The notes beneath the pieces were generated by a model. The model had not been told where the DNA came from, made no database searches, and saw nothing but the letters and a program-made list of their open reading frames with translations. Shown here one piece after another: positions 4,171 through 10,525 of a stretch of DNA of 64,000 nt. This DNA is from Vitrella brassicaformis CCMP3155 (Eukaryota; Protista; Chromerida). The DNA lies in contig CDMY01000453.1 of NCBI GenBank assembly GCA_001179505.1, positions 1 through 64,000 of the forward strand. Direction: 5' to 3'. Position 1 is the stretch's first letter; each line of letters begins with the position of its first letter. The position numbers were made by a program, and so were the translations under genes.

Positions 4171-7100
4171 TCAAAGTCTCTTCCAGTCTGGCCACCATAC
4201 CTGTGTGTCGTCGTAGTTGACCCTGCTGCCGTTGGTGTGTGGGGTGTCCCCACGGTCCAAGTTGCTGGCGCGGCTGGCGGGGTGGCTGCAGGTCTTGGTG
4301 AGGATCTGGCGGGGCGGCAGCTCGAGGAGCGGCTTGGCGGGAATGCCCCCGAAGCGCGAGTGGCTGCCGAACTCCTCGCCCTTCATCATCAAGGAGCTGC
4401 CCACCAGGTAGGAACCCTCGTGCATGTGTGTGCTGCAGATAACAGACGGACAGGCAGATCAGTGTGCTGGGCGTTCTCCATCCATCCATTCACTCACTGG
4501 TAGAGAACGACGGCCCGCGTGCCGACGGTGCAGTGCCTGTCGATCTTGATGCGGCCCTAGACACAAACATCAGCCAAGCCACACAAGCATAGCATCCCTC
4601 AGCCGCCCACCTGTTCTCTCTCTCTGTCTGTCTGCCTCCCTCCCTCCCTCACTCAACACACCACTCACCATCTTCATGATTCGGTCCTCAAACAGGTGGC
4701 CCTGCACCGTCACATCCGCGTTGATGCAGCAGTCGTCCCCAATCTCAATCAGGTCAGGCTCAGTCAGATGGGGAGTCGCCAGGTACACACGGTGGCCGAT
4801 CTTGGCGCCCAGCAGCCGGAACCACATCGACATGAAAGGCGTCCCCGAGAGCATCCGGATGAACGAGGCGTACGCCAAGTCCTCCTCCAGTGCAGTGCTC
4901 AGCTCCGCCCGCCACACGAATGGCGACCACAGGGGCGCATTGGTGTCCTCCTTGTATCGGCCCACCAGCAGGTACTTGCCCTGCACCGCCACTATCGCGT
5001 TGATGCCGCCGTAGATGAGGAACACCGCCGGGGCGAGGGCGATCGATGGCATGCCCAGGTAGGCGTAGAGGACGTCCTGGAAGACCCACCACGCCAGCAG
5101 GAAGGCATAGGTGGACACCAGCGGGGGCAGGAAGGTCCGGAGCAGCTCGATGGACGCACGAATAGGGTAGAGGTAGAGCGGGGGGTGGAAGGTGAGCCGG
5201 TCGGCGTCGGTCTTGACGATGGCCCGGTTGGGGAGTCGGAAGGGGGGCGAGCCGAGCCAGGAGGTGTGTGGGGTGGACGACAAGGCGGGAGGGGGCGCCA
5301 GCGACATGACGCCGAGCAGCACGCTCTCGCCGAAGTGGGAGCCGCCCGGCACACAGGCGTTGTTGCCAAGGAAGGTCCTCTCCTTAAGGACCACCTGCCC
5401 CCAGACAGACAGACAGACAGACCAGCCACTGACGTGTTTGTCTGTGAGTGCGTGGATGTCTGCACTGCATGTGCATGTGTGTGTGCCGGACGGACCTTCT
5501 TGAGTGTCATGTGCCTGTCGTGGCCCACTCGCCACCCGCCGAGGCCCACGAAGTCTGCCACGAAGCAGTCGTCACCGATGTCGAGCATATCGGGGGTCCA
5601 CTCGCGGGCATCGCTGATCTCAACACGGCGACCTGCACCACACACACACACACACACATACACAGGTGTGTCTGTTTAAGTGGTAAGGTCATGCGCGCTG
5701 CAGTGCACTTACCGAGTTTGGCGCCGAGCATGTTGAAGTAGCTCCTCGTGAACATGGTGGAGTAGAACTGGTGGCACACGACGGTGGTGATCTGCTGGAT
5801 GGTGTAGTTCATCAGCCAGCGCAGGTAGAACCACCCATACAGAGGATAGGACCCCTCGCGGATGCGCCCCACCGTCAGCCACTTCAGAATCACCTGCACA
5901 CAGCACAGCACAGACACACAACAAGGGGAGATGGCTGCACACTTGGACGAGGCCGCGACACAATCTCTGTTTTGCAAGCTTACGGTGAAGGTGAAGAGTG
6001 CGGTGAGCCCGGCAATCACGAAGGCGGGAGCGAAGATGATCGAGATGACGAAGCCGTATGTGATGGTGACCCAGATACCAAAGGTGATGGGCGCCATGAG
6101 GACCACACTCAGCCCGTAGGACGCCAGCAGGAAGCCGACAGTGAAGGCCAGCTGGACCAACACACCCACCTGCACACACCACACACACCACACCGACACC
6201 CCCGCCATACAGACAGGTGACTTCTCCTTCCCACACACAGAGAGACACGCGGACACGCACCCACCTGCTTGTGCTCAGCCAGATTAGTGTGGCTGTCGCT
6301 GTTGGCAGGGTGGGTGATCTCGGGGTGACCCCCCTCTGCGTCCACCACTGCAACGGCTGCGGGCGCGCCCTCAAACCGATGATGGGCAGGAACAGTCTGA
6401 CCTGCAGACACACGCAGAGAGAGAAAGAGACAACGGTGTGTGGCTCTCTCTCTCGTGTGCTGTGGGCGAATCATCACGATCACGCACCTGGCATCAGGAC
6501 AGCGAGGTCGCCGAGGGTGGCTCCATCCTCCATAGACGCGCCATGTTTGACGCAGGAGCGCATCCCCAACACAGAGCCACGGCCCAGATGCACACGGGAC
6601 AACTTGAGCTTGCCGTCCTCCACCTCGACACACGACACACGCGCGCCCACGTTGACCACCTGCACACCACGGAGAGAAATGAGGTCATTGTTGGGGAGAG
6701 AGGGGAGAGGGAGGGATGATGTGCTGGCTGACCACATCGTCTTCGATCTCGAGGAGGTCATATCCGCTGACGAGGGTGGACGCAATGTGCACATTCCGAC
6801 CCACCTTAGACCTGACAACACACGCGGTGATGCGACCGACCATCACACTAACACGCTCTCCCTGCCATCCCCACTCACCCGAACAGCCGCAGCACGACAG
6901 GCGCGATGGGCGTGCTCGCGAAGATCCCGGCGGGCATGCCGATTGTGTGGGCGATCCACCATCTCAAGTAGAACCATCCCCACAGGGGGTGCTCCCCTTC
7001 CTGCAGGTTGCCGAGAATGAGCCACTTGAGGAAGGCTGCGGTGACGAGGTACATGGCGAAGGAGCCGAAGGCGAACATCGGGAAGGTCACGAGCAGGTAG

Positions 7101-10100: not shown

Positions 10101-10525
10101 TCCCCATCCCAATGGCTCACCAGCGGGGTACTCGGGGTCGATGCTGACATAGGCCCCTCCCGCCTTGAGGATGGCCAGCATGCAGACGTAGAACTGCCCT
10201 CCTCTGGGCAGGAAGACGCCCACCAGGTCGTCAGGACCCACGCCACACGCACGGATGAGGATCGACAGCTCGTTGGCGCGCGCATTGAGCTCCCCATACG
10301 TCCACACGATGCCGTCCTCATCACACCTGACACACACATCCACGCACACGCACACCATGCACACGGTGCACGCGCAGATCTGTAGGAGTCCTTTCCCTAC
10401 TCGACGGCGATGTTGGTGGGGTAGGCAATGGCGGAGTTCTCGAATATGTGGTGGAGTAGCGGTTCCGTTCCGCAGTGCGTGTGCGCCAGACGGGCGAGGT
10501 GGCGACTCACACCCGCATCCGCCAT
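4171..10525 (-). CDS. pls: Membrane-bound single-module NRPS-like enzyme of the epsilon-poly-L-lysine synthetase (Pls) family: A domain, PCP, 6 TM and three C-terminal repeats (NRPS_term_dom type); ~22 exons
   Basis: A-domain cores: [50 protein letters not shown]|[51 protein letters not shown]: [11 protein letters not shown]. Three repeats of hydrophobic pair, KW/KY-L-x-x-G, PL(W/Y), (L/F)GxK(I/L/V)G and LxIxDD. C-terminal [27 protein letters not shown]. Frame is conserved across GT-AG introns. Confidence 0.92.

Follow-up and report, generated by a model that had tools for sequence, protein, structure and literature searches.

A spliced nuclear gene of the chromerid Vitrella brassicaformis predicted to encode a lysine-specific synthetase of the Pls/PosA family

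Introduction

Does a photosynthetic relative of the apicomplexans carry, as a gene of its own, an enzyme for making a cationic isopeptide polymer? The question is raised by a Pls-type locus in the first 64,000 nucleotides of contig CDMY01000453.1 (assembly GCA_001179505.1) of Vitrella brassicaformis CCMP3155, a stretch referred to here in its full length as the window. Our analysis showed that the gene at this locus is resident in the nuclear genome, transcribed and spliced, and the predicted protein carries the architecture and the substrate code of a lysine-polymerizing synthetase.

The natural polycations epsilon-poly-L-lysine and its relatives are antimicrobial and find industrial use. To our knowledge, such polymers have so far been shown among eukaryotes in a few fungi only. 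The fungal synthetase Epls of Epichloe festucae has been experimentally established and yields epsilon-poly-L-lysine of 8-34 residues (PMC7179176). Homologues of the family have been stated for 'Metazoa, Alveota, and Amoebozoa' (Patel & Gulick 2023, PMC10522769), and the same study lists CEM14083.1 from Vitrella brassicaformis, giving its code as D A E S I G T V V K and its predicted substrate as lysine (Suppl. Table 2, Fig. 5). CEM14083.1 is most likely the product of the window gene, because the sole other Vitrella copy found was CEM08117.1. That Vitrella has a Pls homologue of lysine type was thus known before (PMC10522769), and a preliminary description of the locus from its letters alone erred in suggesting that it might be undescribed and in knowing of no report from alveolates. 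As a family member, the protein is ordinary. In that study, CEM14083.1 is a table row and a tree leaf, without a gene model or an analysis of expression, paralogues or orthologues. What is new here is a largely transcript-supported cDNA model suited to synthesis and expression, together with two old paralogues, orthologues in Piridium and Chromera, and evidence for vertical inheritance; the added value is practical more than conceptual.

Results

Domain architecture and family membership

Profile scans (NCBIfam/Pfam) of the open reading frames (ORFs) of the exons yielded matches to TIGR01733 and to the AMP-binding families PF00501/PF13193, and all core motifs (A3-A10) of an adenylation (A) domain were found in the protein (SGSTGRPKG at residue 204, FDAS at 247, NTYGPTE at 336, YRTGD at 514, others at 532 and 623). 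Exon 11 matched the PP-binding family PF00550 of peptidyl carrier protein (PCP) domains at 36.5 bits (cut-off, 20.8), with the phosphopantetheine-attachment residue Ser693 (codon 7618-7620) in the motif GGNS (residues 690-693). The profile TIGR02353 ('Pls/PosA family non-ribosomal peptide synthetase') was matched at 9e-62 by the best ORF fragment (profile positions 400-651 of 695) and at 6.5e-61 by exon 20; scored piecewise on exons, the best piece reached 206.5 bits and the sum ~353 bits, relative to a curated cut-off of 423.1. Two relatives introduced below, the Vitrella protein CEM08117.1 (484.8 bits) and the Piridium sociabile protein (459.5 bits), are both above this cut-off. A local hidden Markov model (HMM) for the C-terminal domain, with 106 family members from outside the chrompodellids as its training set, gave the three proteins almost equal scores (window protein, 730.7 bits; CEM08117.1, 721.6; Piridium, 731.1). 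Among the family columns conserved at 90% or more, 162 of 173 were kept (A domain, 76/81; PCP, 10/11; C-terminal domain, 76/81), and most of the 11 deviating columns were common to the chrompodellid relatives. On these comparisons, the Vitrella protein very likely belongs to the Pls/PosA family.

The membrane portion was traced by Kyte-Doolittle hydropathy (19-residue window; threshold, 1.5), which revealed three hydrophobic pairs at residues 770-794/809-839, 1017-1047/1051-1069 and ~1262-1283/1291-1314, with five of the six segments strong. No hydrophobic leader was seen, the maximum beyond residues 740-1330 being 1.48, within the A domain and under the threshold. From residue ~760 onward, internal alignment resolved three homologous units (pairwise E = 3e-22, 9e-21 and 2e-15), each opening with a hydrophobic pair and closing with a hexapeptide-like region that gave weak Hexapep and WcaF-type matches. 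The third beta-helix region, C3, carries the family-invariant Q-x-H-L-F-E-D-R (His1411, codon 4696-4698) and S-L-M-M-K-G-E, in which the columns Q, H, F, E, R and K are invariant (alignment A1). No Pfam match to a condensation (PF00668) or thioesterase (PF00975) domain was obtained in the scanned ORFs and exons, which span most of the gene, and the precomputed Pfam lists of the relatives were likewise without either domain.

These data bear out much of the preliminary description, which had proposed an A-PCP di-domain with a GGNS serine, six hydrophobic segments in three pairs, the lack of canonical condensation and thioesterase domains and, overall, a Pls-type homopoly(amino acid) synthetase architecture: TIGR01733, PF00501 and PF00550 were matched, hydropathy recovered the pairs, and the A domain, carrier and three transmembrane (TM)-pair/beta-helix units follow in that order. 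The HMM searches it had suggested for AMP-binding, PP-binding and TIGR02353 all gave matches on exons. Its three repeats also align; the ending GHLFEDR..SLMMKGE that it assigned to each, however, belongs to repeat 3 only, where HLFEDR (residue 1411) and MMKGE (residue 1455) occur once each.

Substrate code

The ten specificity positions, read from a 110-row alignment, spell DAESIGTVVK (D248, A249, E252, S291, I313, G315, T337, V345, V346, K629). This is the code of Streptomyces albulus Pls, for which lysine is experimentally established (Suppl. Table 2, PMC10522769), so that the identity extends to 10/10 positions; the code is common to all four chrompodellid proteins (the window protein, CEM08117.1, Piridium and Chromera). 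The same alignment columns returned the published codes of other members, namely DAESIGSVVK for Nematostella, DMEHNGTVSK for the PosA type and DGESISVVNK for the beta-lysine type, which validates the extraction. Position 2 of the code tracks substrate length, with Met in PosA and Phe in the diaminopropionate (DAP)/diaminobutyrate (DAB) enzymes (PMC10522769), and is Ala in the Vitrella protein. The enzyme is very probably lysine-specific, as judged from its code.

Gene model

All coding signal of the Pls-type locus lies on the minus strand of the window, in a region of 61-63% GC. The gene model was built by hand from the minus-strand reading under the GT-AG rule for all 22 introns, and its translation contains zero internal stops between the ATG (10523-10525) and the TAA (3972-3974). 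Its features are as follows.

3972..10525, minus strand: whole coding span; 23 exons, 22 GT-AG introns, coding sequence (CDS) of 4698 nt = 1565 aa
10525-10401, 10326-10121, 10023-9834, 9757-9566, 9481-9431, minus strand: exons 1-5, adenylation domain
9344-9224, 9162-9033, 8948-8789, 8709-8152, 8055-7854, minus strand: exons 6-10, adenylation domain
7854..10525, minus strand: adenylation domain as a whole (exons 1-10), residues ~25-640; TIGR01733, PF00501/PF13193, motifs, code alignment, RNA contigs
7430..7761, minus strand: carrier domain, exons 11-12 (7761-7570, 7480-7430); PF00550, motif position, exon 11 in RNA contigs
6265..7342, minus strand: repeat 1, exons 13-16 (7342-6879, 6811-6733, 6659-6488, 6401-6265); TIGR02353, hydropathy, repeat alignment
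5496..6169, minus strand: repeat 2, exons 17-19 (6169-5984, 5893-5713, 5632-5496); TIGR02353 on exons 18 and 19, hydropathy, RNA joint
4201..5394, minus strand: exons 20-22 (5394-4669, 4556-4498, 4432-4201); TIGR02353, RNA joints, alignment columns
3972..4118, minus strand: putative last coding exon, 49 aa without homology to anything, following intron 22 (4119-4200)

Repeat 1 comprises the TM1/TM2 hairpin (residues 770-839; 7004-7213), the beta-helix C1 and a linker, and its exon 13 was seen in RNA contigs. Repeat 2 holds TM3/TM4 (residues 1017-1069; 5993-6151; hydropathy maxima, 2.0-2.4) and the opening part of the beta-helix C2, whereas exons 20-22 encode the end of C2, TM5/TM6 (residues ~1262-1314; 4987-5145) and the beta-helix C3. 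The model protein is colinear with residues 6-1475 of the transcript-derived protein of Piridium sociabile (P0001) at 55% identity. Because this alignment begins at residue 6, the start codon is sound and the protein opens with the A domain itself; 4 codons 5' of the ATG, at 10535-10537, stands an in-frame TGA. For the donor of intron 14, 6733 and 6736 are both possible, and 6733 was chosen because the intron then matches the paralogue in column and phase and the length fits Piridium. Between the A-domain motifs A6 and A7 lies a low-complexity, Ser/Glu/Arg-rich insert of ~105 aa (residues ~405-510; 8355-8672, minus strand); the inserts that the paralogue and Piridium have here are shorter and cannot be aligned.

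The introns of the model measure 61-112 nt (mean, 84 nt; 22 introns) and show the base bias of the host, with A+C-rich 5' halves and G+T-rich 3' halves; the GC content at third codon positions (GC3) of the coding sequence is 85%. The introns had been described as microsatellite introns, which is only roughly right: (TG)3+ occurs in 13/22 and (CA)3+ in 6/22. Two other details of the preliminary description needed correction, as the model has 22 introns instead of about 21, and the gene does not end at 4171 but, as described next, is spliced at 4200 to one more exon, most probably ending with the TAA at 3972-3974.

Transcript evidence

Seven public runs contain roughly half or more of the words sampled from the locus, and contigs of four of them were placed on 4160-10159. 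Run X2 yielded contigs that run colinear with the genomic sequence and represent unspliced DNA, whereas the contigs of runs X1, X5 and X7 have exon pieces joined, as in the spliced form. In record 15 of X5, exons 3, 4, 9, 10, 11 and 13 appear as separate pieces whose spacings equal the model exon lengths exactly; the 462 nt between exons 4 and 9 are the sum of exons 5-8 (51+121+130+160). By this piece arithmetic, introns 3-12 are spliced in RNA-type contigs. Introns 19-21 are spliced as well, with the joints 5392>5494, 4555>4668 and 4432>4498 present in X1, X5 and X7 and absent in X2; plus-strand CT..AC at these joints corresponds to minus-strand GT..AG. Exon 9 (8152-8709) runs unbroken in the RNA contigs of X1, X5 and X7, which indicates that the low-complexity insert is coding and retained in the mRNA and rules out a hidden intron inside this large exon. 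Introns 1 and 2, outside the mapped stretch, are supported by homology only.

At the 3' end, the matches of X5 record 14 and X7 record 16 stop at 4201 while the contigs extend 272 nt further, so that the donor of intron 22 at 4200 is used and the gene extends past 4171. The acceptor of this intron would lie at 4119/4118, the nearest in-frame ...TGTCAG, and the CDS most probably ends at the TAA at 3972-3974. A run of N (assembly gap) at ~3410-3710, which appears as X in ORF translations, lies ~140 bp past the inferred transcript end and ~260 bp past the stop; this gap may have disturbed the public gene model.

Simple repeats of GTCT and GA type in introns (5402-5422, 7784-7804, 4618-4657) draw very many unrelated contigs, and the false 'joints' and depth spikes they produce are a trap for splice calling in the Vitrella genome. 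Many other joints involving 5402/5422 and 7786 were treated as artefacts, since they are sited in intronic simple repeats.

What the locus holds is a nuclear gene of the organism itself, transcribed and spliced. This agrees with the preliminary description, which had argued from the introns for a resident nuclear gene rather than bacterial contamination: spliced contigs occur in X1, X5 and X7, and all 22 introns are GT-AG. The splice check that it had proposed turned out in its favour, with spliced transcripts found for introns 3-12 and 19-21 and a model that is open without stops.

Paralogue, orthologues and phylogeny

Among 1.84 billion cluster representatives, the top match of the window protein was the Piridium sociabile transcript (EukProt, P0001), and a search with the Piridium protein gave Vitrella CEM08117.1 (P0158) and Chromera velia Cvel_1691 (P0073), the window protein itself not being among the matches. 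CEM08117.1, ~60% identical to the window protein and by coincidence also 1565 aa long, is by sequence comparison a paralogue. Its gene (contig CDMY01000384.1, L001:3001-9315) has 19 exons and 18 introns of the same style, 6 of which share exact position and phase with the 22 introns of the window gene; so few coinciding introns point to heavy intron gain or loss since the duplication. No second copy was found inside the window.

In a careful tree (39 rows, 1296 columns, LG+C20 PMSF), the window gene grouped with Piridium (support, 97/91), this pair with CEM08117.1 (100/100), and all three with Chromera (100/100). This topology places the duplication before the Vitrella/Piridium split and makes the gene older than the Chromera/Vitrella split; on the phylogenetic evidence, the gene is old and vertically inherited in chrompodellids, with no recent transfer. 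The phylogeny with bacterial and fungal Pls that had been proposed at the outset was realized in part: the tree includes bacterial rows and, as its one named fungal row, the Basidiobolus protein P0067.

Next outward, on long branches, stand Nematostella vectensis XP_001625520 (P0023; 502.8 bits on TIGR02353), with weak support beside the chrompodellid clade (83/48), and an uncultured bacterial lineage (100/98). The Nematostella placement may reflect an origin common to the eukaryotes, independent transfers or long-branch attraction. The bacterial relative, the P0141 cluster (L002:10001-14687, metagenome contig k141_532096), has an intronless gene followed directly by a phosphopantetheinyl transferase (ACPS) gene; its code, DSECYGGVTK, is that of a Bdellovibrionales enzyme with modest arginine activity (PMC10522769). 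The highest non-eukaryotic identity (~36%) was to proteins from metagenome-assembled genomes (MAGs) of Planctomycetota and Verrucomicrobiota. Bacteria of this Planctomycetes-Verrucomicrobia-Chlamydiae (PVC) group are not favoured as the donor, since despite the top identity they are not sister to the chrompodellid clade in the careful tree. No apicomplexan homologue appeared among the matches seen, which is consistent with, but does not show, a loss in Apicomplexa.

Fold of the C-terminal domain and proposed mechanism

Structures of the family in the PDB are of A domains only, namely 7wew (Pls) and 8g95-8g98, which we take to be PosA. A PDB sequence search with the C-terminal exon 20 matched no solved chain, and a full-text literature search returned no cryo-EM paper on Pls. 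A structure model of the C-terminal 729 residues of the Piridium orthologue (36-row alignment; predicted local distance difference test [pLDDT], 88.6; predicted template modelling score [pTM], 0.88) has three long hairpins of helices, with short helices and then a beta-helix after each. Its top PDB matches were hexapeptide-repeat acyltransferases (maltose O-acetyltransferase, serine acetyltransferase and sugar N-acyltransferases), with target TM-scores of ~0.5. Enzymes of this type are trimers that take acyl groups from a phosphopantetheine thioester, on either coenzyme A (CoA) or acyl carrier protein (ACP). Since known acyltransferases use such thioesters, the simplest scheme is one in which the beta-helix domain moves lysyl off the enzyme's own carrier arm. 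The Piridium model agrees with that for PosA's C-terminal domain, which was modelled as six membrane helices with three left-handed beta-helices packed together above them in a study that noted no structural information for this domain (PMC10522769).

In the scheme we propose, the cytosolic adenylation domain would activate L-lysine to lysyl-AMP and load it as a thioester on the phosphopantetheine arm of the carrier at Ser693. The C-terminal domain would be an acyltransferase in which three transmembrane hairpins bear three left-handed beta-helices packed as a pseudo-trimer, and it would pass the lysyl group to the side-chain (epsilon) amine of a free lysine or of an untethered chain that is still growing. 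Repetition of this step would produce a cationic homopolymer with isopeptide links, most probably epsilon-poly-L-lysine, which would be released at the membrane or through it. The Q-x-H-L-F-E-D-R motif of unit 3, with His1411, is a candidate catalytic centre. From the sequence, the product is probably epsilon-poly-L-lysine or a close variant; we infer the activity, linkage type, chain length, membrane location and biological role of the enzyme. By analogy with bacteria and Epichloe, an antimicrobial or surface polycation would be the default guess for its role.

Weighing the assignment

We consider it probable that the resident chromerid gene encodes a single-module, membrane-bound Pls/PosA synthetase that polymerizes lysine by the scheme above. 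Several observations weigh against this assignment. The TIGR02353 score of the protein comes from exon pieces only, with their sum (~353 bits) to be set beside the cut-off of 423.1; TM5, the fifth hydrophobic segment, is weak (1.3); the ~105-aa insert inside the A domain is unusual; and the structure model was built on a 57%-identical orthologue, not on the Vitrella protein. The code DSECYGGVTK of P0141, the closest bacterial branch in the tree, differs from that of the chrompodellids, which indicates that specificity changes within this part of the family. Runs X1, X5 and X7 are labelled merely 'RNA?' or '?', and introns 1, 2 and 13-18 as well as the acceptor of intron 22 lie outside the individually seen RNA joints. 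Neither a phosphopantetheinyl transferase (PPTase) nor a peptidase was seen among the flanking ORFs of the window, and no genome-wide search for a partner PPTase was made.

The assignment has to be compared first with a working synthetase of the same family whose product departs from classical epsilon-poly-L-lysine in chain length, in linkage, in the use of another diamino acid, or as a mixed or short oligomer. At least six distinct polymers are made within the family, and a code is not always a safe guide, PosA having first been predicted to be lysine-like while it uses ornithine; the Arg-leaning code of the nearest bacterial branch points the same way. Two paralogues at ~60% identity with the same code suggest a difference beyond substrate, for instance in chain length or location, and the linkers, by which Pls chain length is set (cited in PMC7179176), are unalignable between the Vitrella paralogues. 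The code, however, is identical to that of S. albulus Pls at every position, including the Ala at position 2 that the PosA study ties to lysine-length substrates (PMC10522769), and all four chrompodellid proteins retain it, so that we regard a different product as rather unlikely. Still less probable, in our estimate, is a single transfer, in which the beta-helix domain would move the carrier-bound lysyl once onto a lipid, glycan, wall polymer or protein with no polymerization. The modelled fold does resemble one-shot acyltransferases acting on sugars, serine and lipid A precursors, and the lack of any solved chain matching the C-terminal exon leaves the mechanism of this domain without structural backing (PMC10522769). 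Against a single transfer, every characterized protein with a TIGR02353 domain is a homopolymer synthetase (PMC10522769, PMC7179176), and the Vitrella protein retains 76/81 conserved positions of that domain.

Contaminating bacterial DNA, a transfer that is recent and untranscribed, or a pseudogene in decay might be suspected in a family that is overwhelmingly bacterial, with top non-eukaryotic identities of ~36% to Planctomycetota/Verrucomicrobiota MAGs. These explanations, to which we assign a negligible probability, are ruled out by the spliced transcripts, the intact frame and the GC3 of 85%, by 22 spliceosomal introns biased as in the host (CA-rich 5', GT-rich 3'), by a paralogue on another Vitrella contig with 6 common intron positions, and by the Piridium and Chromera orthologues in one 100/100 clade.

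Genomic surroundings

The ten long flanking ORFs of the window gave no relevant Pfam match to biosynthetic neighbours, an ORF scan being weak in an intron-rich genome. A long ORF at 29685-31994 (minus strand) matched GEX2 N-terminal immunoglobulin (Ig)-like, filamin and bacterial Ig-like repeats. The Vitrella nonribosomal peptide synthetase (NRPS) cluster reported in PMC10794256 (contig CDMY01000646; condensation-adenylation-carrier-thioesterase, C-A-PCP-TE; pyreudione-like) is a different, unrelated gene.

Discussion

The predicted Vitrella enzyme resembles S. albulus Pls in the succession of an A domain, a carrier and three units of a TM pair with a soluble portion ('C1-C3'), and neither has a condensation or thioesterase domain (2008 work cited in PMC7179176, PMC10522769). 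In contrast to S. albulus Pls, it is encoded by a eukaryotic nuclear gene with 22 introns, has the ~105-aa insert in its A domain, and ends in a non-homologous C-terminal tail of ~90 aa. Epls of Epichloe festucae is eukaryotic and has the same architecture, and is thus a precedent for a eukaryote that makes epsilon-poly-L-lysine (PMC7179176). Epls belongs, however, to the fungal lineage, and the named fungal row of the tree, Basidiobolus, falls outside the chrompodellid clade, so that the fungal and chrompodellid acquisitions look independent. CEM08117.1 and the Piridium and Chromera proteins share the architecture and code of the window protein and are all above the TIGR02353 cut-off, the Chromera model (2096 aa) having extra unassigned sequence.

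The delta-poly-L-ornithine synthetase PosA of Acinetobacter baumannii shares the family, the architecture and the modelled secondary-structure layout (PMC10522769). Its code DMEHNGTVSK differs, however, and the Met at position 2 restricts it to ornithine (PMC10522769), whereas the Vitrella protein has Ala. The hexapeptide-repeat acyltransferases are the top structural match of the soluble units, in line with the weak Hexapep/WcaF-type sequence matches. Unlike those enzymes, the Vitrella protein would combine three non-identical beta-helices in one chain, with a membrane hairpin before each; the proposed donor is its own carrier domain, and Q-x-H-L-F-E-D-R is kept in repeat 3 only.

For the chrompodellids as a whole (Vitrella, Chromera and the non-photosynthetic Piridium), it seems to us an evenly balanced proposition that they make a polycationic isopeptide polymer, for instance epsilon-poly-L-lysine, by means of an anciently acquired synthetase, duplicated before the Vitrella/Piridium split. 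If so, the two copies could differ in their job, be it chain length, membrane or life stage, and the polymer might be secreted as an antimicrobial or built into the wall of the cyst or sporangium. Should the enzymes prove active, close photosynthetic relatives of the apicomplexan parasites would make a polycation that could shape their dealings with coral bacteria or contribute to their thick walls.

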